Counted from the stretch's first letter, positions 35,136 to 64,000 are shown. The stretch is 64,000 nt of DNA from Podarcis bocagei (GCA_964188305.1 OZ076900.1), one strand, 5' to 3'. Program-made: numbers and translations. The notes: generated by a model from the letters alone, not told the origin.

Positions 35136-35194
<59 letters not shown>

Positions 35195-35536
35195 AGCATA
35201 CTTATGTAAGAGATACTTATGTATTTTTTGCACAATGCCCAGAAACACCTTAAGCCACCCAAGCTTTGCCCCTTTTGTGTAAACACCTTTGCCTGTGGAC
35301 TAGGAACTCCTTCCCGACCACCTTCCCAAAGCCTGCCTGATTTTGACAAGGCTGCCTAAGGGATCCTACGATGTTGACGCAGCCCCAGCTGGCACCGCGT
35401 TCCCAGAGAGTCAGGCTTCCTGGCACAGCGGAGATCTGGCCGGGAGGGAGGAGTCTCGGGAGGAAAGGTAGCGGCAGGGCACAGCATTTTTTGCGTTTCC
35501 TAAAACATCCCCCTGGTTGCTACGTATTTTCGTATC

Positions 35537-35591
<55 letters not shown>

Positions 35592-36402
35592 GGAAAATCC
35601 GGACATATGGCAGCCGCGCTCTCGGGCTGCTTTACTCTTGTTGCATATCTATATTTCCTCTTTTCACACTACTCCCCCCGAAAACCGCTCTCTAGCACTC
35701 AGTTGGAGCAAACAGCGAGGACCTGAGCAAGGAGAACGCCATCCCATTCTTACCTAATGTTGAGATATCATACACAATATGTAATTGGTTCATGCTCTGT
35801 CCAAGCAAACTAGAAATGGTGAGCAGGGTTAGGGGTTGGGGTTGTCCTCATATAGTCCTTCTGTTTTTTCCTTCCTTTCTTTCAATGACCAATGTATGAA
35901 TACAAGCTGCTAGAGCAACCCTTTGCCAACAAATATCCCACAGGAAGATTTGGAGGTGCCAAGAGTCCAGTAACAGAGTCCTCTGTCAAATGTCCAAACC
36001 CCTAGGGACCCGAAAAACTTTTATGTCTTGAACCATCATGTGATCTTTGGATGAAAGGCTGTATTAAAAAAATTAATTAATTAATTAAAGTAGTAATAAA
36101 CTGCAATCAAATCTGAAACAGTCTGGAGTCTGGAAAAAAACATATGGATCAAAAGGTATGGAAGGAAAAATGCCTGACCAAGAATCAGCAGTAAAGGGGT
36201 AGATAAAAATGGATTGCCTGTTTCCTCCCCATCCCAAGGATTAACAGTATTCCGTCTTGGTCAGCTAGGAACACCTCTCTGTAATGTTTCTACCCCTTGT
36301 AAAAGTTGTTCCTAACCTAACGTTATCTAAATATTATAAATAAATAAATAAATAAATAAATAAACACACACACACATACATACATACATACATACATACA
36401 TA

Positions 36403-36597
36403 CAGTGGTACCTCGGGTTAAGAACTTAATTCGATCCAGAGGTCCGTTCTTAACCTGAAACTGTCTTAATATGAAGCACCACTTTAGCTAATGGGGCCTC
36501 CCGCTGCCGCCGCGCCACCACCGCACAACTTCTGTTCTCATCCTGAAGCAACGTTCTTAACCCAAGGTACTATTTCTGGGTACCCGAGGTACCACTG
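36403..36597. mobile_element. Same MITE within the 10.6 kb unit (also 38203-38426 and a related truncated copy from 38951; all repeated in units 2 and 3)
   Basis: TIR cagtggtacctc / gaggtaccactg, TA flanks. Confidence 0.8.
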
Positions 36598-37639
36598 TAT
36601 TGAGTGTACCTGAAGACGTGTGCATGCACGCTAAAGCTCATACCAATAACAAACTTAGTTGGGCCCCAAGGCGCTACTGGAAGGATTTTTTTCTTTTCTT
36701 TCGACTATGGCAGACCAACACGGCAACTAAATATCAACTAAATATCTACCTGCAACTAAATATCAGGGGCATGGAGGTGTGGTTCCACTGGGGATATATG
36801 AGTGCAGAGGCGGAGCTGGTACCCAGAGCTGGTACCCAGACCCGGAGCTGGCACCCGGGGGTGGGCCGATCCTCCCAGAGGGGCGGGGTGGCGAGCACGG
36901 GGGCGGCACCGCCTGCCGCGACAGTCCCACGGGGGCGGTGCCACTCGCGGCGAGTGTCCCGGGGGAGGGCGCGGCGGCGATGTCACCCCCACCTCAGAGA
37001 ATACACCGGGGGCGCCCCGCATCCCCTTCCTTAGCCAGTGCCCTCGTGCTCTATCCGCATAGCTGTCAACCTTCCCTTTTTGCGGGAAATTCCCTTATCT
37101 CAGCGCTGCTTCCCGCTGCTATCCCGGATTGTTCGATATCCCGTAGACTGTCCCCGGGACAGGTGAGGCTGCTGATCCCTTCTTTCCAAATCCGAAAGTT
37201 GACAGCTATGCTCCGTCCTCTATCCTCCCCAAGTCTGATTTCTCTGCCTGATGTCTGTGGGAACCTGCCCGGCTGCCCCCTTGATTTAATAGACTTGTAG
37301 AGTTGCAAGGGTTCCTCAAGGATCATCAATGAAATGCAGGATTTGCTCCTCCAGAGGAGGAAAGAGTATTTGGAAATCCATGTGGAGGGGAGGGCAACCT
37401 TTCTTGGGTAGCCTCAGGCAAGCCTTGCCCTAGCCTGCTTCCCAGGGCTGTCTTGAAACTCCACTCCAGACTCTCAGGAAGAGAAAGGGCAATATAACAA
37501 ACCACACAAAGCAAATCTCCAGGGTGTGACGTTTCTGTAGACCGAGTGGAAGAGGCAGGGAAGATGATTCTCAGTACAGGACGAACGGGATGCCCAAATT
37601 TAAGATGGGGAACCCTGTTGGAAGACCTGGAGATGGAGG

Positions 37640-38140
37640 AAGGGATTCGCTTCCTTTAAGGGCTCAAACCACTACGTGCAGGATTTCCCTGGGCAAGCAG
37701 CGCGCTGCCCATCGCCTTCCCTTCCACCCTCTGCGTTTTGTGGGCCTCCAGGCAGAGGAGCGAGCCAAGAGCCCCGCTGGGACCGGGACGCCGCTGAGAG
37801 TGACTCCAGGGCCCCGGGCTCTGAGCCAGCGATGCTCTCGGCGGTCCCCCCGACGCCCTCCTGCCTCGCCCACCGACCACGTCAGGGGCAGGAATCCTTA
37901 AAGGGCGCAACTTGCGCTACGCCCCCTTCCCGGCGTGGCGGCGCACGGTAGGAGGGAAGATGGAGGAGGGTGGCTGCGGAGCGTCCGAAGGAGCCGCGGA
38001 GGCTCGCGAAAAGGCCCTCGAGGAGGCGGTGAACCGCTGGACGGTCCCCTTCTACGTCCACCAGGCCCTCCAGGCTTTCCGGGCCGGCCGCAGCCGGGAC
38101 TTTCGCCAGCTGCGGGACGTCGTATCTGGTGGGGAGACGA
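37640..38140 (+). promoter_or_regulatory. CpG-island-like promoter/exon 1 region of the TERF2-like gene (repeated at ~48200-48705 and ~58805-59310)
   Basis: High GC and CpG density immediately upstream of and across the ATG exon; contains CACGTG and CACGTCA motifs. Confidence 0.6.
37960..38128 (+). CDS. TERF2: TERF2-like copy 1 exon 1 (N-terminus and start of TRFH)
   Basis: aagATGG Kozak context; [56 protein letters not shown]; donor gtgggg, phase 1. Confidence 0.9.
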
Positions 38141-41100
38141 GCTAGTTTTACGAAAGGGGCATTTGGGGAAGATTGGCGCTGGGTTCCATAATTCTCAAGG
38201 GACAGTGGTACCTCGGGGACTTAATTCGTTCCGGAGGTCCGTCCTGAACCTGAAACTGTTCTTAACCTGAAGCACCACTTGAGCTAATGGGGCCTCCTCC
38301 TGCTGCTGCTGCGCCAACGGAGCACAATTTCTGTTCTCATCCTGAAGCAAAGTTCTTAACCTGAAGCACTATTTCTGGGTTAGCCGAGTCTGTAACCTGA
38401 AGCGTCTGTAATCCGAGGTACCACTGTACTTCCTGCTGGGGAACGTGAATGTAAATAACTAATAATGATAATAATAATTTTATAATTTATACCCCGCCCA
38501 CGTGGCTGGGTTTCCTCAGCCGCTCTGGACGGCTCACAGCCTACAGTATATCAGAACATACTAAAACATCAAACATTAAAATATATTGCCTAATAGCCCC
38601 CGTTCCACTTATGTCACTCTTACGTATTTACATTTATATATCACATTTAATAGTCCTTAGGTGTTTTCATTTAAGAAAAAGTGAACCTAAAGCAACTTAA
38701 AATATAATACAATCTATATCCCTGGAATGTTTGTCATTTGCCTTTAGAAATTAAGGGAACCGATTTTAAAAGAAAAGGCACAACGTACAACTAACCAACT
38801 GCACGGAAGCCAAAAGGAAGGTCTGCAAATAGCCAGTTGTGATTCTCAGCAAGATGGTTAGGATACATGCCCCCTTAAATGAATGCCTCCTAAAGCCCAT
38901 CACAGATGGTCACGAGAAGGGTTAGGATCCCCCCCCCAGCCTCCTAAGTACAGTGGTACCTCGATTTATGAACTTAATCCATTCTGGAAGTCCGTTCTTA
39001 AACCGAAATGGTTCTTAAACTGAGGCGCATCTTCCCTAATGAGACCTTCCGCTGCCGGTGCCCTTCCACCGTTCGTATTCCGTTCTTAGACTGAGGTAAA
39101 GTTCTCAAACTGGGACACTATTTCCGGTTTTGTGGAGTTCGTAAACCAAATTGTTCTTAAACAGGACTGTTCTTAAACCTCTTGAAATCTATTTCAAATT
39201 GGAGATTGTTGATGCGTATATTAAGAGAATGAGTTTAATGAGTTTTGGGTATGGCCCGTAGTTGAGTGTGATGGTTTCCAGAAGCCAACCGCTAGGAATG
39301 GCCTAGCACCTTTGGAGTATAGTTTTAAGAAGCTCAGCTACTTTACCACTCATTTTCTTACAGTAATTACTTCTGTATGTCTGTAAATAAAATCTGTACA
39401 TACTGCATTTCTGCCCTACAAAACAGGAGCCCCAACAAAATATCTGACCACAAAGATTAAGACACTAAAAAGCCATGTGTTTGTGTATATATGCATACTA
39501 AGGATATTGTAGATTACATGCAAAAAGCACGCAAATACGAAGTGACTCCTGGGTCAAAGGGCATGTTGGGATGAAGTTGGCTGTCTGTATATGGTCAGGG
39601 GTATAAGGTATGGGACAGGGCTTTGGTGCCCTGGCCCAAGCCTCATTACACCTAATTTGCTGAACTATCTGATTTTGCTCAGTGACTGTTTGGACTGTCT
39701 TGTTCTTCTCCAGCTGTGCTTGCACGGCCCCTAGCGCAAGAGAAATGTATTGGCATTCAGCTGCAGATTGTGCAGTTTCTGTCTAAGATTGATGAAGATT
39801 GGACCATTGATCCCGAGACCAAGTTAATGCCTCTTGAAGATGCCCTTGTTATTTTGGATAAGATGAAGGATGAACTGGACTTAAACAGTGACGTAGCAGA
39901 AGAAATAAGAAAAAAAATAAAGGAAGCGGTAAGTGTTAGCATTTCCTCTTCTGTAGTCACTGATTACTGTTTCTCAGCCTAGTTAGAAAGTAAGAGGACA
40001 GCTGCCTTTAAGTTTCAAAATGCAGTATATTTCAGAAAGGGTTTAATTAAGGTTCTAATTCAATGCCAGGATTAACTCTTGCCTATTTTTCTCCATGCTT
40101 AAATTAAGCTTTTAAATAAGTTCACAAAAGTTAGTAGAAGCAAGGAGGCAAGATTCCTATATGGTGGGATGAAATGAGAGAGAAATGTATGCTCAAAGGT
40201 GCCTGAGTTTATTGGAACTCAGCATGTTTTCCTTCTTTGGGAAATCCAGGGTAATCATGGAAAAAATGGCTTCTTGACTGACTCTCCTAAGGCACCCATT
40301 ATTTCAATGTTGTTAGCCTACAGATATTTAAGTAGCTTGCCTTACTTGAATTTAAAAATAATTTTCTTGAATAAGTGTTCTAATATTACACAATGAAAAC
40401 CCACTGAGTTGAAAATGTAAAGCAGATCTAGAAAACTGCCGGGGGGTTGTTCCCAAACAGTATCTTCTTAGATTAGGAACATTTCCCCAAAATCTTCCTT
40501 GCAAACCATTATTTTGTCTTTCTTCTTCAGGCTGTCATAACCTGCATTAAAAACAAAAAATATGCACAAGCCAGAATGATCTTGAATAAGCACATGACAA
40601 AGGACCCAAGTTCAAAGGTGAGCTTTCAGCAGGTATGAGTAGTTCATGTTGCAATTGTTGTTGTTGAAATGTGCCTCTTGTAGGGTCATTTCACTACAAA
40701 GCAGAGTCATGGTTTGTCCTTCTCAAATTCTCCTATTCAGTGTCTTAAATACTCTCTGCCCTGCGCTGCAATTTGCTTGCAAGTTCTGAAAAACATTTCC
40801 CTTTTCTTAGAAAATGAGGTCAATGTTGCAGAGAATCATCCAAAGAAAAAACTTAAGTCACCGAGCCATCCGGAACTTCTGCTGCAAAGTTTTCCAGCAG
40901 AGAATACTTCTGTCTTTAGAAAGCTGCTGGAGTGTCCCTGAGCCCTTTCTTTTAGAGGTAAGCAAGGGTATGGGGTGTTGTTTGATTGTTGTAGTAGTGG
41001 GAGGACTATAGCTCCGTAGCCGAGCATCTGCTTTGCATGCAGAGGGTCCCAAGTTCAATCCCTGACATCTCTAGCTAGGACTGGGAATGTCCCCTGCTTG

Positions 41101-44100
41101 GAACCCTGGAGAGCCACCGTCACTCAATGTGTGGTGATATGTGAGCCAGCCTTTTTTTCTTCCGATGTTCCCGTGTGTTGCTGGAGCACTTGAATATCAC
41201 CCACATTGCCACAGCAGAGCTCTTGCCGTCTAACCACTGTGATCAAAAAAGCACATTCAACACCGGAGGCTTAAGACAGGAGCCTTCTCCCTGGACAAAC
41301 TATTATGTGCTTGGGAAATATTTTTGTGAAGAGCCAAGTGCCCCACTGCAGAACAGAACAGGGCTGCAATGTCACATTTGACATATATCAAGCTTGTAAC
41401 TTGACAGTGTTTTGGACTAGCAATACCCAACAGCTCCAGCATCATGAGGCTGTGCTGACTGGGACTTAGGGGAGTTGTAGGTAAAGCATCTTCAGGGCAC
41501 CAGCTTGGGCATGGCTGCTGTATAGATGTAGAAAAAGAAAAAGAAAGTAGAGAAGTGTTGTCTAGTAACTGTGTTCACACTCTCTGTTTAAGATGGCAAA
41601 AAAGGATTTGGACGATCAGATAGAGACCGGGCTCAGTCCTTTGGAAATGGCCAGCAAGGAGGAAATGGTGAAAGAAACTTCAGAGTTGGCAGCAGCAGAT
41701 AAGCCTGAATCTGTGGGAAGATCTGATGAGACTTTGGAAGAGCCCAGGCCTGAGGGAGGGCTTAGCAATACAGCCGAAGAACAACCAAAGTCTCTGGAGG
41801 GAGGCCGTGAGACAGTTGCAAGGCTTTTGATGGAGGCAAAGGGAGCTGTTTTGGAAGTTGCTAAAGTGGTTGATGAGTGCCAGGCAGCTTCAAAGCCAGA
41901 AGAAGAAACCAGTGGAGCTGCAGAGCCTGCTATAGTTGCTGATGCCACTGTCTCAGCAGCTTCCAGTGACACGGACAGGTTAGCAGCCTATGGCCTCTCC
42001 CAGTTTTGACTCCTTTGCCATGCCGGGCAGCTGTTTTGCCATACAACTTCTGGCTCTCAGCACTCAAACCCAAATTGCACCTGCTGCCAGGGGAACAAGG
42101 TCTTTGGGGTGAGGTCAACAACATAAACTGGCAAAACTTGTGGAGCAACCTGCTGATGTTTCTTTATTTTGCAGATGCTCGCCTAAGAGGATGGGCTCGC
42201 ATCCAGGTTTGGCTTCTGATTTCCACGCAGCCAAGGGCCAAAGGGAGGAGGAGAACCATGCTGCCTCCAGGCCACACCCTAGTGAATGCTCAGTGTCCAC
42301 AAGCACACGGGTTATGGGGTCAGAGAGCGGGAACCCCCCAACTTCCTTCCAGGTTTCATCCAAGAGGCCTGCGGCAACTTTGGATGTCCAGACAACACAG
42401 CCCCAAATACCCACCCAGCCTGATGATACCTCCCAATCTCCCAGGTAAGAGTCCATGACTGCTGTGAGGTCTGCTGGGGAGCTGGCACAGCATGAAGCAT
42501 TTGGTGCCGCTTTCGCCTTTGCAAGGAATCCATTCGAAGGCCTTAGGCCTCAGCCCAGAAGCTCCAAGGAAGGCAAAGGTGGTTTGCAGTGGTAGGGTTG
42601 CATTGCTGTGCATCTTCTCCCCCAGCTAGTAGAATCAGGTGGCGAGAGAATCAGGTTGACATACCTTGTCTTAATCTTTATTACTCAGATTGCAAAGACA
42701 GCAGAACTGACAATACGGTTTCTGGCCCCATTAAAGACTGCTAAACAAATTTATTGTGGCAGAAACACCTGTGCCAGACTCTGCTTTGTCAGATGCCTGG
42801 AATGTTAGCTTCAGTTGCCAGACAAAAGGTAGAAATTGTTATTTCTCTCCCCCCTCCCTCCTTCCGTCAGTTTCAAGGATAAGGGTTTAGGTTTCTGCCA
42901 CCAGCTATTTGCTCCTATTTAAACTGTCATAGGTCTCTGCAGTAGTGTGTTTGCTGTGACAAATTAACCTCCCTCCTTGTCTGACACTTAAACTCAGCAT
43001 CTCCATAATTTTGGTCATGTGTGACATTAACTGATGCAGCTCAGTCCTGTCCCATCTCCTTGTGGGGTAAGTCTTTCCTCACTTGTGTTTCTCTGTTCCA
43101 TTCAGATTAGCTAAGAGGAGACTAATTTGTTCAGATCAGAATGAAGAAGAGGATCTCCCAGGTGGTGAAGAGGTTCATAGGGACCGGGACCAGCCCGAGA
43201 CCCCCAGAGACCCCCGACACCTGGGTAAGCAGCAACTGTTTGAATCTGCTTGCCTGGTTTTGGGTGCTCGGCATGATCAAGGTTTCTTTGCCCCAAGGCT
43301 GCTATTGCAGAAATATAGCAAAGCTACTCTCAAAAGAGCAAAGCTGCCAAGCAGCTGACGCTCTCCTCTGAATGTCAGAATGCCAGAAGCTTTGAGTTCC
43401 CATTGTCTGCTCCATAGATTTGGAACCTGCTGAAGCAGCTAGTATCCTGTACACAGTAAGCAGAGGGGTTTTGGGGTACAGCTCTTGGCTCAAAAAAGTA
43501 AAATATTTGGACTGCCTGCTCCAAGTGCACAGCAGCAGCAGCAGCAGCAGCAGCGCGGACAAAATCATTGCCTTTTGCCTCAGACTGGCTTCTTGTTCTG
43601 CAGGGTGCTCAACCATGGCTCCATGCACTCTTCTAATTAAAGCACCTGTGCAGTTTGGATGGCTTCCCACATTGCATTACCCAGTGACATCACAATGACA
43701 TGGGGGAAAACATCGCTAGCATGGCAGGCAATCCTTCAGGAGGCTTGCTTAGGCTATGCACAGGCTGGCTAAAGGCAAAAGTCTCAAAACCTGGCAAACA
43801 TCTTACAAAGCAAAGTGTTCTTCTTCCACCGCTGCCGCCACCACCAGGTTTCTTGTGTGGTGAACCGGCTTATACTTGAGTCAATAAGTTTTCCCAGTTT
43901 TTGGTGCTATAATGAGGTGCCTCAGCTTATATGTGGGTCGGCTTATACTCGAGTATATACGGTAATAAAAGAGGACATGTCTGGCATGTCTGGCAACCCC
44001 AACATAGTTTCATCAGTAGTTGGCTGCCTACGCATCATGCTGCCAAACGCTGGGTAGAAATTGACCACTACCCTGGATTTCTGATGAGGGGACAGTAGTG

Positions 44101-45271
44101 GTAAAACCTCCCAATTACTGAGCCAGTAGCAATAACCAGCTTACTGAGTGGTTCCATCCATCCTGTAAATGAATTTATGTTTCAGAATCGAAGGGAAAAA
44201 GCAGCAGCAGCAGCAGCAGCAGCACTTCCCGCTTGGGTTCTAAAAAGAAGGTAACCAAGCCTATACCCAGTCTGGAGCTGAGCACACCAGTGAGAACAGA
44301 TAGGTCTGCCTTGATAAGACCCCTCTAAATGGAGGCCAGTTGATGAGGACCACCTCTCCCAAATGAAGTAACTGATGAAAGCCCCATTAATGGGAACATA
44401 GGAAGCTGCCATATGCTGAATCCTGGTCCGTCTAGCTCAGTATTGTCTGTGCTACAGGCTTTCAGGCAAGGTGTCTCTTTTGCAGCTCTGCCTGGATATG
44501 TCACAGGTTTGAAGCTGGGATGTTCTGCGTGTTCAACCCCTGGACTAAGGGGCATCTATCTCCTAGTTAATTAATCAAGGGCAGTGGGGGCCAAACTTGG
44601 CCCTCCAGCTGTTTTGGGAGTACAATTCCCACCATCCCTGACCACTGGTCCTGTTAGCTAGGGATAATGGGAGTTGTAGTCCCAAAACAGCCGGAGGGCC
44701 AAGTTTGGCCATCACTGATCAAGAGTCTTGGATACCCGGATGTTTCCAAGAAGCCTGGGCAATCTCAGCACGTCATATCTGCTATCTTTGATAGCCTCTT
44801 GAACCACACTGTAAGGTGGCTGAATTTTATTACCTACATTTTGCAGAAGGAGAACTAAGTGTGGAGAGCGTGCCATCAAGTTGGGTTTAATGTCTCGAAA
44901 TATGGGCCAGATATTTGCCTGCTTTGAGTCACTGGGCTACAGCCCATGTCAGCGGTAATCCTCTGTTAGCAACAGCCATGGAGCCATCTCCAGAGGGTGG
45001 GGTATCTGTCGTTCTGTCATGGGGGCAGGGGGCAAGTCTTGCAGCACTTGATGGTTGCTCACGAGAGCCTGTGCCCTCTTCTTTCTAGATCTGGACTTCA
45101 GAGGAGTCTCAGTGGATTAAGGAAGGTGTGAAGAGGTTTGGGGAAGGGAGGTGGAAAGCCATCTGCAAGGCATTCCCCTTTAAGAACCGGACGCCTGTGG
45201 CGATCAAGGACCGATGGCGGACGATGAAGAATCAGGGGCTCTTGGGGAATGACCTGGAAGCAAGTGGCTGA
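37960..45271 (+). CDS. TERF2: TERF2/TRF2-like telomeric repeat-binding factor, array copy 1 (9 exons, 546 aa, intact)
   Basis: Exons 37960-38128, 39714-39928, 40531-40617, 40811-40957, 41593-41978, 42175-42444, 43106-43224, 44186-44250, 45089-45271 give 1641 nt, all GT-AG and in frame to TGA. TRFH domain ([27 protein letters not shown]; [11 protein letters not shown]; [11 protein letters not shown]; EPFLLEMAKK) plus telobox Myb ([21 protein letters not shown]...[14 protein letters not shown]). The symbol marks the family; this may be a paralog. Confidence 0.92.
39714..39928 (+). CDS. TERF2: TERF2-like copy 1 exon 2 (TRFH; equals fused TERF2 exons 2+3)
   Basis: [52 protein letters not shown]...KIKEA; ctccag acceptor, gtaagt donor. 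Confidence 0.9.
40531..40617 (+). CDS. TERF2: TERF2-like copy 1 exon 3 (TRFH)
   Basis: 87 nt; [29 protein letters not shown]. Confidence 0.92.
40811..40957 (+). CDS. TERF2: TERF2-like copy 1 exon 4 (end of TRFH)
   Basis: 147 nt; [49 protein letters not shown]. Confidence 0.92.
40998..41135 (+). mobile_element. tRNA-derived SINE in a TERF2-like intron (repeated in each unit)
   Basis: A-box/B-box-like head tagctccgtagccgagc...gttcaatccc followed by a non-tRNA body. Confidence 0.55.
41593..41978 (+). CDS. TERF2: TERF2-like copy 1 exon 5 (acidic hinge)
   Basis: MAKKDLDD...SSDTDR; tttaag acceptor, gttagc donor, phase 0 to 2. Confidence 0.85.
42175..42444 (+). CDS. TERF2: TERF2-like copy 1 exon 6 (hinge)
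   Basis: 270 nt, ttgcag acceptor and gtaaga donor, phase 2 to 2, open. Confidence 0.8.
43106..43224 (+). CDS. TERF2: TERF2-like copy 1 exon 7 (hinge)
   Basis: 119 nt, attcag acceptor and gtaagc donor, phase 2 to 1; [17 protein letters not shown]... Confidence 0.8.
44186..44250 (+). CDS. TERF2: TERF2-like copy 1 exon 8 (poly-Ser and Myb N-terminal arm)
   Basis: ESKGK-S8-TSRLGSKKK; tttcag acceptor, gtaacc donor, phase 1 to 0. Confidence 0.85.
44582..44717. mobile_element. Palindromic hAT MITE in the last TERF2-like intron (repeated at ~55188-55323)
   Basis: Long inverted arms ggccaaacttggccctcc / ggagggccaagtttggcc; TSD atcaaggg / atcaagag. Confidence 0.7.
45089..45271 (+). CDS. TERF2: TERF2-like copy 1 exon 9 (telobox Myb domain and stop)
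   Basis: [60 protein letters not shown]. Confidence 0.95.
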
Positions 45272-45936: not shown

Positions 45937-46109
45937 TCCTACGTTGCTGACGCAGCCCCAGCTGGCACCGCGTTCCCAGAGAGCCAGGCTTCCTGGCACA
46001 GCGGAGATGTGGCCGGGAGGGAGGAGTCTCGGGAGGAAAGGTAGCGGCAGGGCACAGCATTTTTTGCCTTTCCTAAAACATCCCCCTGGTTGCTATGTAT
46101 TTTCGTATC

Positions 46110-46154
<45 letters not shown>

Positions 46155-52100: not shown

Positions 52101-54776
52101 AAGAAAAAGAAAGTAGAGAAGTGTTGTCTAGTAACTGTGTTCACACTCTCTGTTTAAGATGGCAAAAAAGGATTTGGACGATCAGATAGAGACCGGGCTC
52201 AGTCCTTTGGAAATGGCCAGCAAGGAGGAAATGGTGAAAGAAACTTCAGAGTTGGCAGCAGCAGATAAGCCTGAATCTGTGGGAAGATCTGATGAGACTT
52301 TGGAAGAGCCCAGGCCTGAGGGAGGGCTTAGCAATATAGCCGAAGAACAACCAAAGTCTCTGGAGGGAGGCCGTGAGACAGTTGCAAGGCTTTTGATGGA
52401 GGCAAAGGGAGCTGTTTTGGAAGTTGCTAAAGTGGTTGATGAGTGCCAGGCAGCTTCAAAGCCAGAAGAAGAAACCAGTGGAGCTGCAGAGCCTGCTATA
52501 GTTGCTGATGCCACTGTCTCAGCAGCTTCCAGTGACACGGACAGGTTAGCAGCCTATGGCCTCTCCCAGTTTTGACTCCTTTGCCATGCCGGGCAGCTGT
52601 TTTGCCATACAACTTCTGGCTCTCAGCACTCAAACCCAAATTGCACCTGCTGCCAGGGGAACAAGGTCTTTGGGGTGAGGTCAACAACATAAACTGGCAA
52701 AACTTGTGGAGCAACCTGCTGATGTTTCTTTATTTTGCAGATGCTCGCCTAAGAGGATGGGCTCGCATCCAGGTTTGGCTTCTGATTTCCACGCAGCCAA
52801 GGGCCAAAGGGAGGAGGAGAACCATGCTGCCTCCAGGCCACACCCTAGTGAATGCTCAGTGTCCATAAGCACACGGGTTATGGGGTCAGAGAGCGGGAAC
52901 CCCCCAACTTCCTGCCAAGTTTCATCCAAGAGGCCTGCGGCAACTTTGGATGTCCAGACAACACAGCCCCAAATACCCACCCAGCCTGATGATACCTCCC
53001 AATCTCCCAGGTAAGAGTCCATGACTGCTGTGAGGTCTGCTGGGGAGCTGGCACAGCATGAAGCATTTGGTGCCGCTTTCGCCTTTGCAAGGAATCCATT
53101 CGAAGGCCTTAGGCCTCAGCCCAGAAGCTCCAAGGAAGGCAAAGGTGGTTTGCAGTGGTAGGGTTGCATTGCTGTGCATCTTCTCCCCCAGCTAGTAGAA
53201 TCAGGTGGCGAGAGAATCAGGTTGACATACCTTGTCTTAATCTTTATTACTCAGATTGCAAAGACAGCAGAACTGACAATACGGTTTCTGGCCCCATTAA
53301 AGACTGCTAAACAAATTTATTGTGGCAGAAACACCTGTGCCAGACTCTGCTTTGTCAGATGCCTGGAATGTTAGCTTCAGTTGCCAGACAAAAGGTAGAA
53401 ATTGTTATTTCTCTCCCCCCTCCCTCCTTCCGTCAGTTTCAAGGATAAGGGTTTAGGTTTCTGCCACCAGCTATTTGCTCCTATTTAAACTGTCATAGGT
53501 CTCTGCAGTAGTGTGTTTGCTGTGACAAATTAACCTCCCTCCTTGTCTGACACTTAAACTCAGCATCTCCATAATTTTGGTTATGTGTGACATTAACTGA
53601 TGCAGCTCAGTCCTGTCCCATCTCCTTGTGGGGTAAGTCTTTCCTCACTTGTGTTTCTCTGTTCCATTCAGATTAGCTAAGAGGAGACTAATTTGTTCAG
53701 ATCAGAATGAAGAAGAGGATCTCCCAGGTGGTGAAGAGGTTCATAGGGACCGGGACCAGCCCGAGACCCCCAGAGACCCCCGACACCTGGGTAAGCAGCA
53801 ACTGTTTGAATCTGCTTGCCTGGTTTTGGGTGCTCGGCATGATCAAGGTTTCTTTGCCCCAAGGCTGCTATTGCAGAAATATAGCAAAGCTACTCTCAAA
53901 AGAGCAAAGCTGCCAAGCAGCTGACGCTCTCCTCTGAATGTCAGAATGCCAGAAGCTTTGAGTTCCCATTGTCTGCTCCATAGATTTGGAACCTGCTGAA
54001 GCAGCTAGTATCCTGTACACAGTAAGCAGAGGGGTTTTGGGGTACAGCTCTTGGCTCAAAAAAGTAAAATATTTGGACTGCCTGCTCCAAGTGCACAGCA
54101 GCAGCAGCAGCAGCACGGACAAAATCATTGCCTTTTGCCTCAGACTGGCTTCTTGTTCTGCAGGGTGCTCAACCATGGCTCCATGCACTCTTCTAATTAA
54201 AGCACCTGTGCAGTTTGGATGGCTTCCCACATTGCATTACCCAGTGACATCACAATGACATGGGGGGAAACATCGCCAGCATGGCAGGCAAAGACAACTG
54301 TTAAGTGCGATCCTTCAGGAGGCTTGCTTAGGCTATGCACAGGCTGGCTAAAGGCAAAAGTCTCAAAACCTGGCAAACATCTTACAAAGCAAAGTGTTCT
54401 TCTTCCACCGCTGCCGCCACCACCAGGCTTCTTGTGTGGTGAACCGGCTTATACTTGAGTCAATAAGTTTTCCCAGTTTTTGGTGCTATAATGAGGTGCC
54501 TCAGCTTATATGTGGGTCGGCTTATACTCGAGTATATACGGTAATAAAAGAGGACATGTCTGGCATGTCTGGCAACCCCAACATAGTTTCATCAGTAGTT
54601 GGCTGCCTACGCATCATGCTGCCAAACGCTGGGTAGAAATTGACCACTACCCTGGATTTCTGATGAGGGGACAGTAGTGGTAAAACCTCCCAATTACTGA
54701 GCCAGTAGCAATAACCAGCTTACTGAGTGGTTCCATCCATCCTGTAAATGAATTTATGTTTCAGAATCGAAGGGAA

Positions 54777-54830
<54 letters not shown>

Positions 54831-56542
54831 CTTCCCGCTTGGGTTCTAAAAAGAAGGTAACCAAGCCTATACCCAGTCTGGAGCTGAGCACACCAGTGAG
54901 AACAGATAGGTCTGCCTTGATAAGACCCCTCTAAATGGAGGCCAGTTGATGAGGACCGCCTCTCCCAAATGAAGTAACTGATGAAAGCCCCATTAATGGG
55001 AACATAGGAAGCTGCCATATGCTGAATCCTGGTCCGTCTAGCTCAGTATTGTCTGTGCTACAGGCTTTCAGGCAAGGTGTCTCTTTTGCAGCTCTGCCTG
55101 GATATGTCACAGGTTTGAAGCTGGGATGTTCTGCGTGTTCAACCCCTGGACTAAGGGGCATCTATCTCCTAGTTAATTAATCAAGGGCAGTGGGGGCCAA
55201 ACTTGGCCCTCCAGCTGTTTTGGGAGTACAATTCCCACCATCCCTGACCACTGGTCCTGTTAGCTAGGGATAATGGGAGTTGTAGTCCCAAAACAGCCGG
55301 AGGGCCAAGTTTGGCCATCACTGATCAAGAGTCTTGGATACCCGGATGTTTCCAAGAAGCCTGGGCAATCTCAGCACGTCATATCTGCTATCTTTGATAG
55401 CCTCTTGAACCACACTGTAAGGTGGCTGAATTTTATTACCTACATTTTGCAGAAGGAGAACTAAGTGTGGAGAGCGTGCCATCAAGTTGGGTTTAATGTC
55501 TCGAAATATGGGCCAGATATTTGCCTGCTTTGAGTCACTGGGCTACAGCCCATGTCAGCGGTAATCCTCTGTTAGCAACAGCCATGGAGCCATCTCCAGA
55601 GGGTGGGGTATCTGTCGTTCTGTCATGGGGGCAGGGGGCAAGTCTTGCAGCACTTGATGGTTGCTCACGAGAGCCTGTGCCCTCTTCTTTCTAGATCTGG
55701 ACTTCAGAGGAGTCTCAGTGGATTAAGGAAGGTGTGAAGAGGTTTGGGGAAGGGAGGTGGAAAGCCATCTGCAAGGCATTCCCCTTTAAGAACCGGACGC
55801 CTGTGGCGATCAAGGACCGATGGCGGACGATGAAGAATCAGGGGCTCTTGGGGAATGACCTGGAAGCAAGTGGCTGAGCTACAACGCTATGTGGACATAG
55901 GGTGGGCCAGAAATACTTTTGCAGTGTATTGCATTGGGCCAGCAGGCTGGTCACTGCAATCTCTTAGCATCCCTCTGCTTTCTCACATAGGATCTGCCCC
56001 TCCCTGATAATACAAATTCAGCCATCAGGACTTGAATAAGATATACTGTATTCTATCCACAAACAGGACAACATCATCTTATATTCTCAGGATAGGCAAA
56101 CATTCTTATTTACTTTTGGAATCAACTAACTTCAATTAGTATTAATAACATACTCTATAAAATCCCACAACACTGCACCAAAATCCAAAGATGATGCATC
56201 GCCTTGAGGTAATTTAAAACAAATGTTATTTTTACTGAAACTGCAGTGTTTCACACAATTTTGTGTTGCAATTGTGTTTGTGTTGCACACAAACTATGCA
56301 ATTGTATAGTTATCAAAATATTTCCAGTGTTGCTACAGTTGGTAAAAAAGTGATGAGTTCTTTAGATACTACTTTTTTAAAAACCAAAATCCAAAGATGA
56401 TGCATCGCCTTGAGTTAATTTAAAACTAAATGTTATTTTTACTGAAACTGCAGTGTTTCACACATTTTGCGTTGCAATTGTGTTTGTGTTGCACACAAAC
56501 TATGCAATTTTATAGTTATCAAACAAACAGGACAACATCATC
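45937..56542 (+). repeat. ~10.6 kb tandem segmental duplication, unit 2
   Basis: Near-identical to units 1 and 3; the same junction sequence (acaggacaacatcatc|tcctacg) lies at both ends. Confidence 0.95.
48526..55877 (+). CDS. TERF2: TERF2/TRF2-like, array copy 2 (9 exons, 555 aa, intact)
   Basis: Exons 48526-48694, 50280-50494, 51097-51183, 51377-51523, 52159-52544, 52741-53010, 53672-53790, 54765-54856, 55695-55877; same structure as copy 1, poly-Ser 17. Confidence 0.92.
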
Positions 56543-56715
56543 TCCTACGTTGCTGACGCAGCCCCAGCTGGCACCGCGTTCCCAGAGAGCCAGGCTTCCT
56601 GGCACAGCGGAGATGTGGCCGGGAGGGAGGAGTCTCGGGAGGAAAGGTAGCGGCAGGGCACAGCATTTTTTGCCTTTCCTAAAACATCCCCCTGGTTGCT
56701 ATGTATTTTCGTATC

Positions 56716-56760
<45 letters not shown>

Positions 56761-59700
56761 GGAAAATCCGGACATATGGCAGCCGCGCTCTCGGGCTGCT
56801 TTACTCTTGTTGCATATCTATATTTCCTCTTTTCACACTACTCCCCCCCGCCCCCCGGAAACCGCTCTCTAGCACTCAGTTGGAGCAAACAGCGAGGACC
56901 TGAGCAAGGAGAACGCCATCCCATTCTTACCTAATGTTGAGATATCATACACAATATGTAATTGGTTCATGCTCTGTCCAAGCAAACTAGAAATGGTGAG
57001 CAGGGTTAGGGGTTGGGGTTGTCCTCATATAGTCCTTCTGTTTTTTCCTTCCTTTCTTTCAATGACCAATGTATGAATACAATCTGCTGGAGCAACCCTT
57101 TGCCAACAAATATCCCACAGGAAGATTTGGAGGTGCCAAGAGTCCAGTAACAGAGTCCTCTGTCAAATGTCCAAACCCCTAGGGACCCGAAAAACTTTTA
57201 TGTCTTGAACCATCATGTGATCTTTCGGTGAAAGGCTGTATTTAAAAAATAATTAATTAATTAAAGTAGTAATAAACTGCAATCAAATCTGAAACAGTCT
57301 GGAGTCTGGAAAAAAAAAAAAAAGGATCAAAAGGTATGGGAGGAAAAATGCCTGACCGAGAATCAGCAGTAAAGGGGTAGATAAAAATGGATTGCCTGTT
57401 TCCTCCCCATCCCAAGGATTAACAGTATTCCGTCTTGGTCAGCTAGGAGCACCTCTCTGTAATGCTTCTACCCCTTGTAAAAGTTGTTCCTAACCTAACG
57501 TTATCTAAATATTATAAATAATGTTATCTAAATACAGTGGTACCTCGGGTTAAGAACTTAATTCGATCCAGAGGTCCGTTCTTAACCTGAAACTGTTCTT
57601 AACCCGAAGCACCACTTTAGCAAATGGGGCCTCGCGCTGCCGCCGCGCCACCACCGCACAACTTCTGTTCTCATCCTGAAGCAACGTTCTTAACCCGAGG
57701 TACTATTTCTGGGTTAGCGGAGCCTGTAACCTGAAGCGTCTGTAACCCGAGGTACCACTGTATTGAGTGTACCTGAAGACGTGTGCATGCACGCTAAAGC
57801 TCATACCAATAACAAACTTAGTTGGTCCCCAAGGCGCTACTGGAAGGATTTTTTTCTTTTCTTTCGACTATGGCAGACCAACACGGCAACTAAATATCAA
57901 CTAAATATCTACCTGCAACTAAATATCAGGGGCATGGAGGTGTGGTTCCACTGGGGATATATGAGTGCAGAGGCGGAGCGGGTACCCAGAGCTGGTACCC
58001 AGACCCGGAGCTGGCACCCGGGGGTGGGCCGATCCTCCCAGAGGGGCGGGGTGGCGAGCACGGGGGCGGCACCGCCTGCCGCGACAGTCCCACGGGGGCG
58101 GTGCCACTCGCGGCGAGTGTCCCGGGGGAGGGCGCGGCGGCGATGTCACCCCCACCTCAGGGAATACACCGGGGGCGCCCCGCATCCCCTTCCTTAGCCA
58201 GTGCCCTCGTGCTCTATCCGCATAGCTGTCAACCTTCCCTTTTTGCGGGAAATTCCCTTATCTCAGCGCTGCTTCCCGCTGCTATCCCGGATTGTTCGAT
58301 ATCCCGTAGACTGTCCCCGGGACAGGTGAGGCTGCTGATCCCTTCTTTCCAAATCCGAAAGTTGACAGCTATGCTCCGTCCTCTATCCTCCCCAAGTCTG
58401 ATTTCTCTGCCTGATGTCTGTGGGAACCTGCCCGGCTGCCCCCTTGATTTAATAGACTTGTAGAGTTGCAAGGGTTCCTCAAGGATCATCAATGAAATGC
58501 AGAATTTGCTCCTCCAGAGGAGGAAAGAGTATTTGGAAATCCATGTGGAGGGGAGGGCAACCTTTCTTGGGTAGCCTCAGGCAAGCCTTGCCCTAGCCTG
58601 CTTCCCAGGGCTGTCTTGAAACTCCACTCCAGACTCTCAGGAAGACTCTCAGGGCAGTATAACAAACCACACAAAGCAAATCTCCAGGGTGTGACGTTTC
58701 TGTAGACCGAGTGGAAGAGGCAGGGAAGATGATTCTCAGTACAGGACGAACGGGATGCCCAAATTTAAGATGGGGAACCCTGTTGGAAGACCTGGAGATG
58801 GAGGAAGGGATTCGCTTCCTTTAAGGGCTCAAACCACCACGTGCAGGATTTCCCTGGGCAAGCAGCGCTGCGCGCTGCCCATCGCCTTCCCTTCCACCCT
58901 CTGCGCTTGGTGGGCCTCCAGGCAGAGGAGCGAGCCAAGAGCCCCGCTGGGACCGGGACGCCGCTGAGAGTGACTCCAGGGCCCCGGGCTCTGAGCCAGC
59001 GATGCTCTCGGCGGTCCCCCCGACGCCCTCCTGCCTCGCCCACCGACCACGTCAGGGGCAGGAATCCTTAAAGGGCGCAACTTGCGCTACGCCCCCTTCC
59101 CGGCGTGGCGGCGCACGGTAGGAGGGAAGATGGAGGAGGGTGGCTGCGGAGCGTCCGAAGGAGCCGCGGAGGCTCGCGAAAAGGCCCTCGAGGAGGCGGT
59201 GAACCGCTGGACGGTCCCCTTCTACGTCCACCAGGCCCTCCAGGCTTTCCGGGCCGGCCGCAGCCGGGACTTTCGCCAGCTGCGGGACGTCGTATCTGGT
59301 GGGGAGACGAGCTAGTTTTACGAAAGGGGCATTTGGGGAAGATTGGCGCTGGGTTCCATAATTCTCAAGGGACAGTGGTACCTCGGGGACTTAATTCGTT
59401 CCGGAGGTCCGTCCTGAACCTGAAACTGTTCTTAACCTGAAGCACCACTTGAGCTAATGGGGCCTCCTCCTGCTGCTGCTGCGCCAACGGAGCACAATTT
59501 CTGTTCTCATCCTGAAGCAAAGTTCTTAACCTGAAGCACTATTTCTGGGTTAGCCGAGTCTGTAACCTGAAGCGTCTGTAACCCGAGGTACCACTGTACC
59601 TCCTGCTGGGGAACGTGAATGTAAATAACTAATAATGATAATAATAATTTTACCATTTATACCCCGCCCACGTGGCTGGGTTTCCTCAGCCGCTCCGGAC

Positions 59701-62700
59701 GGCTCACAGCCTACAGTATATCAGAACATACTAAAACATCAAACATTAAAATATATTGCCTAATAGCCCCCGTTCCACTTATGTCACTCTTACGTATTTA
59801 CATTTATATATCACATTTAATAGTCCTTAGGTGTTTTCATTTAAGAAAAAGTGAACCTAAAGCAACTTAAAATATAATACAATCTATATCCCTGGAATGT
59901 TTGTCATTTGCCTTTAGAAATTAAGGGAACCGATTTTAAAAGAAAAGGCACAACGTACAACTAACCAACTGCACGGAAGCCAAAAGGAAGGTCTGCAAAT
60001 AGCCAGTTGTGATTCTCAGCAAGATGGTTAGGATACATGCCCCCTTAAATGAATGCCTCCTAAAGCCCATCACAGATGGTCACGAGAAGGGTTAGGATCC
60101 CCCCCCCCAGCCTCCTAAGTACAGTGGTACCTCGATTTATGAACTTAATCCATTCTGGAAGTCCGTTCTTAAACCGAAATGGTTCTTAAACTGAGGCGCA
60201 TCTTCCCTAATGAGACCTTCCGCTGCCGGTGCCCTTCCACCGTTCGTATTCCGTTCTTAGACTGAGGTAAAGTTCTCAAACTGGGACACTATTTCCGGTT
60301 TTGTGGAGTTCGTAAACCAAATTGTTCTTAAACAGGACTGTTCTTAAACCTCTTGAAATCTATTTCAAATTGGAGATTGTTGATGCGTATATTAAGAGAA
60401 TGAGTTTAATGAGTTTTGGGTATGGCCCGTAGTTGAGTGTGATGGTTTCCAGAAGCCAACCGCTAGGAATGTCCTAGCACCTTTGGAGTATAGTTTTAAG
60501 AAGCTCAGCTACTTTACCACTCATTTTCTTACAGTAATTACTTCTGTATGTCTGTAAATAAAATCTGTACATACTGCATTTCTGCCCTACAAAACAGGAG
60601 CCCCAACAAAATATCTGACCACAAAGATTAAGACACTAAAAAGCCATGTGTTTGTGTATATATGCATACTAAGGATATTGTAGATTACATGCAAAAAGCA
60701 CGCAAATACGAAGTGACTCCTGGGTCAAAGGGCATGTTGGGATGAAGTTGGCTGTCTGTATATGGTCAGGGGTATAAGGTATGGGACAGGGCTTTGGTGC
60801 CCTGGCCCAAGCCTCATTACACCTAATTTGCTGAACTATCTGATTTTGCTCAGTGACTGTTTGGACTGTCTTGTTCTTCTCCAGCTGTGCTTGCACGGCC
60901 CCTAGCGCAAGAGAAATGTATTGGCATTCAGCTGCAGATTGTGCAGTTTCTGTCTAAGATTGATGAAGATTGGACCATTGATCCCGAGACCAAGTTAATG
61001 CCTCTTGAAGATGCCCTTGTTATTTTGGATAAGATGAAGGATGAACTGGACTTAAACAGTGACGTAGCAGAAGAAATAAGAAAAAAAATAAAGGAAGCGG
61101 TAAGTGTTAGCATTTCCTCTTCTGTAGTCACTGATTACTGTTTCTCAGCCTAGTTAGAAAGTAAGAGGACAGCTGCCTTTAAGTTTCAAAATGCAGTATA
61201 TTTCAGAAAGGGTTTAATTAAGGTTCTAATTCAATGCCAGGATTAACTCTTGCCTATTTTTCTCCATGCTTAAATTAAGCTTTTAAATAAGTTCACAAAA
61301 GTTAGTAGAAGCAAGGAGGCAAGATTCCTATATGGTGGGATGAAATGAGAGAGAAATGTATGCTCAAAGGTGCCTGAGTTTATTGGAACTCAGCATGTTT
61401 TCCTTCTTTGGGAAATCCAGGGTAATCATGGAAAAAATGGCTTCTTGACTGACTCTCCTAAGGCACCCATTATTTCAATGTTGTTAGCCTACAGATATTT
61501 AAGTAGCTTGCCTTACTTGAATTTAAAAATAATTTTCTTGAATAAGTGATCTAATATTACACAATGAAAACCCACTGAGTTGAAAATGTAAAGCAGATCT
61601 AGAAAACTGCCGGGGGGTTGTTCCCAAACAGTATCTTCTTAGATTAGGAACATTTCCCCAAAATCTTCCTTGCAAACCATTATTTTGTCTTTCTTCTTCA
61701 GGCTGTCATAACCTGCATTAAAAACAAAAAATATGCACAAGCCAGAATGATCTTGAATAAGCACATGACAAAGGACCCAAGTTCAAAGGTGAGCTTTCAG
61801 CAGGTATGAGTAGTTCATGTTGCAATTGTTGTTGTTGAAATGTGCCTCTTGTAGGGTCATTTCACTACAAAGCAGAGTCATGGTTTGTCCTTCTCAAATT
61901 CTCCTATTCAGTGTCTTAAATACTCTCTGCCCTGCGCTGCAATTTGCTTGCAAGTTCTGAAAAACATTTCCCTTTTCTTAGAAAATGAGGTCAATGTTGC
62001 AGAGAATCATCCAAAGAAAAAACTTAAGTCACCGAGCCATCCGGAACTTCTGCTGCAAAGTTTTCCAGCAGAGAATACTTCTGTCTTTAGAAAGCTGCTG
62101 GAGTGTCCCTGAGCCCTTTCTTTTAGAGGTAAGCAAGGGTATGGGGTGTTGTTTGATTGTTGTAGTAGTGGGAGGACTATAGCTCCGTAGCCGAGCATCT
62201 GCTTTGCATGCAGAGGGTCCCAAGTTCAATCCCTGACATCTCTAGCTAGGACTGGGAATGTCCCCTGCTTGGAACCCTGGAGAGCCACCGTCACTCAATG
62301 TGTGGTGATATGTGAGCCAGCCTTTTTTTCTTCCGATGTTCCCGTGTGTTGCTGGAGCACTTGAATATCACCCACATTGCCACAGCAGAGCTCTTGCCGT
62401 CTAACCACTGTGATCAAAAAAGCACATTCAACACCGGAGGCTTAAGACAGGAGCCTTCTCCCTGGACAAACTATTATGTGCTTGGGAAATATTTTTGTGA
62501 AGAGCCAAGTGCCCCACTGCAGAACAGAACAGGGCTGCAATGTCACATTTGACATATATCAAGCTTGTAACTTGACAGTGTTTTGGACTAGCAATACCCA
62601 ACAGCTCCAGCATCATGAGGCTGTGCTGACTGGGACTTAGGGGAGTTGTAGGTAAAGCATCTTCAGGGCACCAGCTTGGGCATGGCTGCTGTATAGATGT

Positions 62701-64000
62701 AGAAAAAGAAAAAGAAAGTAGAGAAGTGTTGTCTAGTAACTGTGTTCACACTCTCTGTTTAAGATGGCAAAAAAGGATTTGGACGATCAGATAGAGACCG
62801 GGCTCAGTCCTTTGGAAATGGCCAGCAAGGAGGAAATGGTGAAAGAAACTTCAGAGTTGGCAGCAGCAGATAAGCCTGAATCTGTGGGAAGATCTGATGA
62901 GACTTTGGAAGAGCCCAGGCCTGAGGGAGGGCTTAGCAATATAGCCGAAGAACAACCAAAGTCTCTGGAGGGAGGCCGTGAGACAGTTGCAAGGCTTTTG
63001 ATGGAGGCAAAGGGAGCTGTTTTGGAAGTTGCTAAAGTGGTTGATGAGTGCCAGGCAGCTTCAAAGCCAGAAGAAGAAACCAGTGGAGCTGCAGAGCCTG
63101 CTATAGTTGCTGATGCCACTGTCTCAGCAGCTTCCAGTGACACGGACAGGTTAGCAGCCTATGGCCTCTCCCAGTTTTGACTCCTTTGCCATGCCGGGCA
63201 GCTGTTTTGCCATACAACTTCTGGCTCTCAGCACTCAAACCCAAATTGCACCTGCTGCCAGGGGAACAAGGTCTTTGGGGTGAGGTCAACAACATAAACT
63301 GGCAAAACTTGTGGAGCAACCTGCTGATGTTTCTTTATTTTGCAGATGCTCGCCTAAGAGGATGGGCTCGCATCCAGGTTTGGCTTCTGATTTCCACGCA
63401 GCCAAGGGCCAAAGGGAGGAGGAGAACCATGCTGCCTCCAGGCCACACCCTAGTGAATGCTCAGTGTCCACAAGCACACGGGTTATGGGGTCAGAGAGCG
63501 GGAACCCCCCAACTTCCTTCCAGGTTTCATCCAAGAGGCCTGCGGCAACTTTGGATGTCCAGACAACACAGCCCCAAATACCCACCCAGCCTGATGATAC
63601 CTCCCAATCTCCCAGGTAAGAGTCCATGACTGCTGTGAGGTCTGCTGGGGAGCTGGCACAGCATGAAGCATTTGGTGCCGCTTTCGCCTTTGCAAGGAAT
63701 CCATTCGAAGGCCTTAGGCCTCAGCCCAGAAGCTCCAAGGAAGGCAAAGGTGGTTTGCAGTGGTAGGGTTGCATTGCTGTGCATCTTCTCCCCCAGCTAG
63801 TAGAATCAGGTGGCGAGAGAATCAGGTTGACATACCTTGTCTTAATCTTTATTACTCAGATTGCAAAGACAGCAGAACTGACAATACGGTTTCTGGCCCC
63901 ATTAAAGACTGCTAAACAAATTTATTGTGGCAGAAACACCTGTGCCAGACTCTGCTTTGTCAGATGCCTGGAATGTTAGCTTCAGTTGCCAGACAAAAGG
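56543..64000 (+). repeat. ~10.6 kb tandem segmental duplication, unit 3 (partial)
   Basis: Near-identical to unit 2 up to the window edge. Confidence 0.95.
59130..63615 (+). CDS. TERF2: TERF2/TRF2-like, array copy 3 (exons 1-6; continues past the right edge)
   Basis: Exons 59130-59298, 60885-61099, 61702-61788, 61982-62128, 62764-63149, 63346-63615; open frames. Confidence 0.9.

Follow-up and report, generated by a model that had tools for sequence, protein, structure and literature searches.

We analysed a 64,000-nt stretch of the Podarcis bocagei genome (GCA_964188305.1 OZ076900.1), referred to below as the window; all positions given without further indication are those of the window. Its right-hand part is occupied by a tandem array of head-to-tail units (U1–U3; Table 1), each of which carries a gene related to TERF2, the gene of the shelterin protein TRF2. 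We refer to this gene, a paralogue of TERF2, as TERF2L. Exons of an ADAMTS13-like metalloprotease lie at the other side of the window.

Unit boundaries were obtained from a repeat search and self-BLAST, and the divergence between units from a three-way MAFFT alignment. U1 and U2 differ at 58 of 10510 aligned bases (0.55%) and by 12 insertion or deletion (indel) events, U2 and U3 at 18 of 7456 bases (0.24%), and U1 and U3 by 0.67%. Ampliconic gene families are characterized by tandem or palindromic units of at least 97–99% identity; here, at least three head-to-tail units agree at 99.3–99.8% of aligned bases. The U1/U2 and U2/U3 junctions are identical to each other in sequence, and no N occurs anywhere in the window. 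The differences between units cluster in their first 3 kb, and the gene bodies differ by only ~0.1–0.2%. The first ~3 kb of U1 is the most diverged part, which fits the expectation for the edge of an array. Upstream of 35364, the window contains no older, degenerate units, only ~220-nt repeats resembling short interspersed elements (SINE-like). Copies of this repeat, 70–90% identical to one another (2091–2305, 27921–28160, 31488–31707, 36400–36580, 38202–38411 and 38929–39144), are found in the flank and several times in each of U1, U2 and U3, and could act as substrates for unequal exchange. A spacing of 10611 bp within one repeat family (D18) is a coincidence.

Gene models were built independently of the initial annotation of this DNA, a reading made from the sequence, and were guided by lacertid TERF2 proteins. 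The models for U1 and U2 have AG/GT at every splice boundary. Their proteins differ at three hinge residues (T266I, T377I and F393C) and in the length of a poly-Ser tract in exon 8, whose serines make up the 9 additional residues of the U2 protein (a 27-nt difference); the TRFH and Myb sequences are identical across all copies. A CpG island covers each ATG (GC content 0.68–0.72, CpG observed/expected 0.85–0.99; whole window 0.38). Each ATG is also preceded, ~1 kb upstream, by a second CpG-rich block (36760–37160, 47326–47725 and 57930–58329), which is probably a GC-rich repeat element and not a promoter, since 47616–47771 is 89% identical to 5913–6080 on the opposite strand.

Table 1. Features of the TERF2L array and its surroundings in the window
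Feature	Position	Strand	Details
Tandem array	35364-64000	+	at least 3 head-to-tail units of ~10.6 kb; from repeat search, self-BLAST and alignment; ends at window edge
Unit 1 (U1)	35364-45936	+	10573 bp
Unit 2 (U2)	45937-56542	+	10606 bp
Unit 3 (U3)	56543-64000	+	partial; cut by the window end after exon 6
U1 gene	37960-45271	+	546 aa, 9 exons: 37960-38128, 39714-39928, 40531-40617, 40811-40957, 41593-41978, 42175-42444, 43106-43224, 44186-44250, 45089-45271
U2 gene	48526-55877	+	555 aa, 9 exons: 48526-48694, 50280-50494, 51097-51183, 51377-51523, 52159-52544, 52741-53010, 53672-53790, 54765-54856, 55695-55877
U3 gene	59130-63615	+	exons 1-6, all open: 59130-59298, 60885-61099, 61702-61788, 61982-62128, 62764-63149, 63346-63615; exons 7-9 beyond or at window end
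CpG island over ATG	37760-38159 (U1), 48326-48725 (U2), 58930-59329 (U3)	+	
Exon 6	42175-42444 (U1), 52741-53010 (U2), 63346-63615 (U3)	+	270 nt, canonical 369 nt; 99-nt in-frame deletion
Exon 7	43106-43224 (U1)	+	119 nt, canonical 77 nt (42 nt longer); iDDR-like 'EVWSDEDELF' replaced
Exon 8	44186-44250 (U1), 54765-54856 (U2)	+	(AGC)n poly-Ser tract; 8 Ser (U1), 17 Ser (U2)
Exon 9	45089-45271 (U1), 55695-55877 (U2)	+	telobox Myb domain and paralogue-specific 8-aa tail before the stop
Segment homologous to canonical TERF2 locus	37682-45644 (U1)	+	against L004 9748-17508; 78-95% identity by block
ADAMTS13-like metalloprotease exons	720-12000	-	only ADAMTS13 chains match in PDB; head-to-head with the array

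The assignment to the TRF2 family is supported by several lines of evidence. In the PDB, exon 2 matches only human TRF2 TRFH chains (E 1e-8), and a TRFH profile that we built from 17 non-lacertid TRF2 proteins covers residues 27–210 of the window protein end to end (262 bits, E 2e-78). The Myb exon scores best against the TRF2 Myb domain (72 bits), followed by zebrafish Terfa (59) and TRF1 (53), and the exon 9 fragment also matches the Pfam family Myb_DNA-binding (PF00249; 33.9 bits). Pfam searches with single exons recovered only the Myb domain, the TRF model being too long to match them. Over its full length, the window protein is 70–72% identical to lacertid TERF2. The initial annotation had described at least three head-to-tail ~10.6 kb units, carrying 9-exon open genes of 546 and 555 aa and a third copy open as far as visible, with a CpG-rich promoter for each unit, a TRFH dimerisation domain and a telobox Myb domain. 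The repeat search, self-BLAST, the identical junctions and the MAFFT alignment bear out the array; our independent models reproduce both protein lengths exactly, U3 is open through exon 6, a CpG island covers each ATG, and PDB, Pfam and the TRFH profile confirm the two domains. Some features of the TRFH region are shared with other squamates sampled and are thus not specific to the array: exon 2 has 215 nt in the window gene and in canonical lacertid TERF2 alike, and a 4-aa deletion in a TRFH loop (39714–39928; canonical L004 11073–11287) and an Ile at the position of human F120 also occur in the canonical TERF2 of lacertids, Pogona and Phrynosoma.

To place this gene among its relatives, we searched protein representatives with the Myb exon and consulted cluster look-ups, which returned two kinds of lacertid TERF2 entry. 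The first is the canonical TERF2 of Lacerta agilis (P0156), Podarcis lilfordi (P0157) and Zootoca (P0158), with 560–567 aa and the Pfam domain TERF2_RBM in every case. Its place in P. lilfordi is an 85-Mb chromosome with the gene order DHX38, DHODH, TERF2, TMED6, NIP7, and in L. agilis it adjoins DHODH; we take the DHODH/TERF2/TMED6/NIP7 neighbourhood to be that of human TERF2 on 16q22. Entries of the other kind are found on a 47–51-Mb chromosome and comprise a partial model in P. lilfordi (CAI5794208.1, P0003, named TRF2), a 439-aa protein in Zootoca vivipara (XP_034956995.1, P0007) and a 294-aa protein in L. agilis (P0253), the latter two annotated as 'TERF2-like'. Downstream of it, P. lilfordi and Zootoca have a 1577-aa laminin gene, which we take to be LAMC3-like, judging by its length, and the L. 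agilis locus has the same downstream flank as the other lacertid loci. The window gene lacks the DHODH/TMED6–NIP7 synteny by which orthologues of TERF2 are recognized, and it is not an orthologue of TERF2.

The P. lilfordi locus is colinear with window positions 30364–45773 at 92–97% identity and then departs from the unit. Since colinearity stops after one unit, the P. lilfordi assembly has one copy; within the 22–28 kb examined, the paralogue is single-copy in P. lilfordi, Zootoca vivipara and Lacerta agilis, and with one copy each in these three lacertids, the amplification is specific to the window species. Both edges of the unit show local peculiarities. Microsatellites, (TC)n and (GT)n, flank the left edge of the array (35142–35190 and 35540–35588); in P. 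lilfordi, (TC)n is joined straight to the sequence of window position 35662, and the ~470 bp in between are missing. At the other end, the final ~290 bp of every unit (45650–45936 in U1) contain a local duplication of a ~60-bp segment (around 45650–45710 and 45870–45925), and positions 45776–45936 have no counterpart in P. lilfordi; the right breakpoint of the unit has therefore been remodelled.

The unit also retains the traces of its origin. Its homology to the canonical locus extends, introns included, from ~250 bp before the canonical ATG to ~630 bp past the canonical stop; in U1, the copied segment consists of the complete gene, with ~250 bp of promoter before it and ~370 bp of 3' flank after it. 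As both introns and core promoter are included, this is a DNA-level copy of ~7.9 kb, and a retrocopy is ruled out. We computed a maximum-likelihood tree of the proteins, with 15 TERF2 sequences as outgroups. Its lacertid clade (support 100/100) consists of two groups, canonical TERF2 (97/94) and the paralogues (100/97), and the amphisbaenian Rhineura branches outside of them. The window gene belongs to the paralogues, apart from the canonical TERF2 genes of its nearest relatives, a topology that points to a single duplication in the ancestor of Podarcis, Lacerta and Zootoca. The paralogue has evolved 2–5 times faster than TERF2, with terminal branches of 0.10–0.26 as against 0.03–0.05.

These results accord with the proposal, made in the initial annotation, of an extra TRF-family member that is lineage-specific and was recently amplified: a separate canonical TERF2 occupies another chromosome in related lacertids, the tree places the duplication in the lacertid ancestor, with Rhineura outside, and units that differ by 0.24–0.67% contrast with one copy each in the other three species. 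The accompanying claim that no such array had been described stands as far as publications go, for we found none on it; the gene itself was less novel than supposed, since automatic annotation of L. agilis and Zootoca already labels it 'TERF2-like', which puts the paralogue on record, although without comment. We found no published mention of a TERF2 duplicate in lacertids or of any Podarcis TERF2, and no report on the module losses of the paralogue, its fate by lineage or its tandem amplification. Likewise, a survey of metazoan shelterin (PMC8653790) mentions no lacertid TERF2 duplicate in the passages that were searched.

Compared with canonical TERF2, the window protein has lost several modules. 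All paralogues lack the first Met and the basic residues that follow; where canonical TERF2 has 'MARGRGKMAGGGRG', the window protein begins with 'MEEGGCG', so that its translation starts at the equivalent of canonical Met8. The net charge of the N-terminus is accordingly −3, as against +3 in canonical lacertid TERF2, and the basic or Gly/Arg-rich N-terminus of the TRF2 family is absent. All paralogues further share 'GGCG' in place of canonical 'GGRG', and 'EEENHAAS' in place of 'TEKNRAAS' or 'REKNHAAS'. In exon 6, a 33-aa in-frame deletion takes out the RAP1-binding motif, which has been deleted in the Podarcis lineage: the Pfam family TERF2_RBM (PF16772) has no match in exon 6 of U1 and U2, whereas canonical exon 6 matches it with 59.6 bits and the exon 6 region of the Zootoca paralogue with 38.8 bits. 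The Zootoca genome thus still encodes a stretch resembling this motif, and the NCBI model skips it.

Further towards the C-terminus, an iDDR-like acidic cluster around a tryptophan has been described in TRF2 along with other hinge motifs (PMC8653790). In the window protein, the canonical iDDR-like sequence 'EEKEVWSDEDELF' is replaced, and both the tryptophan and the acidic block are gone; the tryptophan is lost in the Zootoca and L. agilis paralogues, too. In the region that aligns with the human TIN2-binding stretch (canonical 'SVSISTLVMGSES'), 'ISTLVM' has become 'TSTRVM' in U1 and 'ISTRVM' in U2, which puts an Arg in place of a hydrophobic residue in the window species. By contrast, the whole TRFH domain and the Myb domain are retained, and the recognition helix (helix 3) and N-terminal arm of the latter are identical to those of lacertid TERF2.

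With moderate confidence, we interpret the array as a real and very recent tandem amplification of a lacertid-specific TERF2 paralogue, most likely by unequal crossing-over between direct repeats. One interchromosomal DNA duplication carried a complete TERF2 with its core promoter into the interval between ADAMTS13 and LAMC3; specific modules were then lost while TRFH and Myb were retained, and a recent tandem expansion followed in the window species. The identical junctions and the graded divergence fit unequal crossing-over. The product is predicted to be a dimer that binds duplex TTAGGG repeats and would neither recruit RAP1 nor have basic-domain and iDDR activities. TERF2L might therefore be described as a stripped-down TRF2, which may act as a specialized occupant of telomeric or interstitial TTAGGG sites, plausibly in the germline, or may modulate canonical TRF2 through competition or heterodimerization. 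In either case, the amplification would raise its dosage.

An alternative that needs to be taken seriously, even though we consider it rather unlikely, is that TERF2L is a functionless duplicate heading for decay, that its amplification was segmental and neutral, and that the copies are intact only because they are very young. The orthologues give this view some weight. In the L. agilis gene (L003 3317–14960), exon 1 contains an in-frame stop, and there are frameshifts of +1 in exon 6 and −1 in exon 9; despite its annotation as a 294-aa protein-coding gene, it is a pseudogene. In P. lilfordi (L001 9937–10024 and L001 11944), an extra A in an A-run shifts the frame of exon 3 by +1, and exons 5 and 6 have been joined in frame by the loss of 357 bp; in the public annotation, the gene is split into genes of 145 and 345 aa, both effectively mis-modelled. 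This orthologue is possibly broken, though the frameshift may be an error, given that it lies in an A-run of a Nanopore-based assembly of a ZW female. The idea in the initial annotation that the gene had been kept intact is therefore true of the window, where every visible copy is open, but not of L. agilis, nor, to judge by the frameshift and large deletion, of P. lilfordi.

Substitution patterns point in both directions. Pairwise ratios of non-synonymous to synonymous substitution rates (dN/dS), calculated according to Nei and Gojobori, are 0.42 for canonical TERF2 between Podarcis and Lacerta and 0.53 between the window gene and the P. lilfordi paralogue; the comparison of the window gene with canonical TERF2, which the initial annotation had suggested, gave about 0.74 for the whole gene and 0.20–0.25 for the Myb exon. 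In the same comparison, dN is 0.118 and as high as the divergence of the introns (9.4%, with ~8 indel events per kb), as the decay model would predict. We polarised changes by parsimony with lacertid sequences only. The shared Podarcis stem has 12 synonymous and 43 non-synonymous changes (omega about 1, p = 0.54) and the P. lilfordi branch 4 and 14 (omega about 1, p = 0.57), in line with decay; on the window branch, the counts are 14 and 17 (omega about 0.33, binomial p = 0.003), which argues against it. It thus appears that a burst of amino-acid change came first and constraint afterwards. Between the copies themselves, 3 non-synonymous and 1 synonymous differences were found, and coding sequence is no more conserved than gene-body introns. 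This could be read as a sign of neutrality, but the test is uninformative, given the concentration of the differences in the first 3 kb of the unit; and as the copies are so young, their near-identity says nothing about selection either.

The reading frame argues against decay. All 546 codons are open despite ~180 substitutions between paralogue and canonical gene, of which an estimated ~100–150 fall on the paralogue lineage, and every one of the several indels in the window coding sequence is in frame. In a similar span of time, the L. agilis copy took on a stop and two frameshifts. When we simulated neutral evolution with 80–156 substitutions, 4.6% down to 0.4% of sequences remained stop-free, even before frameshifts are counted, and an open frame under neutral drift is therefore unlikely. 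Together with the branch counts, the unchanged Myb recognition helix, the CpG islands and the canonical splice sites throughout, these sequence features favour a functional gene in the window lineage.

ANGPTL2, HSPA5, LRRC8A, ADAMTS13 and LAMC3 are all genes of human 9q33–q34. The TERF2L locus of P. lilfordi lies on a 51.1-Mb record and that of Zootoca on a 48.7-Mb record, with the Z2 chromosome of a second Zootoca assembly at about 50 Mb. The Z chromosome of P. lilfordi is reported to have 50.7 Mb (PMC10214862), and orthologues of genes from chicken 4p and 17 and from human X and 9, including ANGPTL2, HSPA5 and LRRC8A, are found on the lacertid Z (PMC6534595). From gene content and chromosome size, it is thus quite probable that TERF2L is located on the Z.

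This invites a more far-reaching interpretation, in which TERF2L is a Z-linked, fast-evolving and dosage-amplified shelterin paralogue of the germline, whose TRFH–Myb dimers would sit on telomeric or interstitial TTAGGG arrays and take part at meiotic telomeres or in sex-chromosome conflict. Telomere-like repeats accumulate on squamate sex chromosomes, and such arrays could provide binding sites. At present, we regard this interpretation as speculative and give it a low probability.

It is less probable still that the copy number is partly an artefact of assembly, with two real copies, or one copy and its haplotypes, stacked in tandem. The divergence between U2 and U3, like that of the gene bodies, is no greater than allelic heterozygosity might produce, and the three other lacertid assemblies have one copy. 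On the other hand, the window is gap-free; the identical junctions join the end of one unit to the start of the next, so that two or more tandem copies must be real; no two of the three units are the same, and their differences include the repeat in exon 8 and the 12 indel events; and the divergence forms a gradient that peaks in the first 3 kb of the edge unit, as in a real array homogenized by unequal exchange. An inflation of the copy number by the assembler would leave intact the paralogue and at least one true junction. Finally, the notion that the array is the species' canonical TERF2 duplicated in place, to which the full-length identity and the shared 9-exon structure might lend some colour, is refuted by the ADAMTS13-like neighbour and, at the orthologous loci, the LAMC3-like one, the position in the paralogue clade and the missing RAP1 motif, and is almost certainly wrong.

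Several observations nevertheless weigh against our preferred reading of a recently amplified, functional paralogue. After the stop codon, 665 nt remain in the unit, and they contain neither AATAAA nor ATTAAA; the first such signal lies 1.39 kb downstream, within the next unit. Product searches found no transcript or protein evidence for the window species; an exact look-up and a homology search with the open reading frame (ORF) of exon 5 yielded no matches in other assemblies or transcripts, and the TERF2 matches included no protein from the window's own genome. DNA binding, dimerization and the loss of partner binding are deduced from the sequence. The 0.24% divergence between U2 and U3 lies within plausible allelic heterozygosity, so that the true number of copies could be lower than in the assembly. 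Few changes could be counted on the branches, and they were derived by parsimony; with the L. agilis orthologue dead, that of P. lilfordi possibly so and a stem omega of ~1, the family as a whole looks weakly constrained. The linkage to the Z is drawn from gene content and chromosome size, not from direct assignment.

TERF2L can be compared with several known systems. Like canonical vertebrate TERF2 (for instance P0157 and P0156), it has 9 coding exons, a TRFH domain and a C-terminal telobox Myb domain; it differs in its locus, its acidic N-terminus, the absence of the RAP1 motif and the iDDR tryptophan, the 8-aa C-terminal extension, the faster amino-acid change and its multiple copies. The lacertid 'TERF2-like' genes (P0007, P0253 and P0003) occupy the orthologous locus with shared flanks, belong to the same clade and share derived changes with the window gene, namely the loss of the first Met and of the iDDR tryptophan and the motifs 'GGCG' and 'EEENHAAS', whereas tandem amplification is found only in the window species. 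Engineered TRF2 alleles exist that lack the basic domain, the RAP1-binding motif or the iDDR. They show the same module losses with TRFH and Myb kept, which are combined in the natural window protein; unlike these alleles, TERF2L evolved naturally and coexists with an intact TERF2.

Lineage-specific paralogues of telomere-end proteins are known from rodents (POT1a/POT1b) and Drosophila (HipHop/K81). There, too, one core end-protection gene became two, and its modules or functions were shared out between the copies or lost in one of them; here, the gene is TRF2, the animals are lacertid lizards, and tandem amplification comes on top. Another comparison is offered by the ampliconic systems of sex chromosomes, such as the Z amplicon of chicken. 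To our knowledge, no shelterin gene is found among such families. In mammals, ampliconic gene families have been described on the X and Y (PMC13616518). TERF2L resembles sex-chromosome ampliconic genes in its head-to-tail units of >99% identity, its lineage-specific gain, its rapid protein evolution and its probable location on the Z; it differs in that only three units are visible in the window and in that sex linkage is deduced from gene content and size.

Vertebrate shelterin genes have been treated as single-copy, dosage-sensitive housekeeping genes, and TERF2L departs from that view, indicating that the telomere proteins of vertebrates have more scope for duplication and change than is commonly supposed. 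Among the modules that experimenters delete when dissecting TRF2 are the three that it lacks, namely basic domain, RAP1-binding motif and iDDR tryptophan. If TERF2L is expressed, it would offer a route to ask what a TRF2 reduced to TRFH and Myb does in a living animal, and would test whether vertebrate telomere proteins join in germline or sex-chromosome evolution, as they do in Drosophila. Should the germline ampliconic interpretation prove true, it would be the first ampliconic telomere-protein gene known in a vertebrate. For annotators, finally, the locus serves as a warning, as lacertid 'TERF2' models mix two loci.

The rest of the window contains further repeats and ORFs, and no RNA families were found in the window with Rfam. 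A second tandem array, of four to five units of ~975–1020 bp that are 84–94% identical, lies at 22005–26585 between the ADAMTS13-like gene and the TERF2L array and includes a 200-bp sub-repeat (25959–26402). Within the ADAMTS13-like region, a GC-rich minisatellite at 4271–5216, with units of 99 and 130 bp (83–95% matches), yields long spurious ORFs on both strands. An ORF of 267 aa at 33342–34145 (− strand) has no Pfam match and resembles, by eye, the C-terminal part of L1 ORF2; it falls into a ~1.1-kb block (33023–34157) that is absent from the otherwise colinear P. lilfordi locus, so that the insertion is probably younger than the divergence of these two lizards. ORFs at 16699–17496 (− strand) resemble the coiled-coil L1 ORF1.

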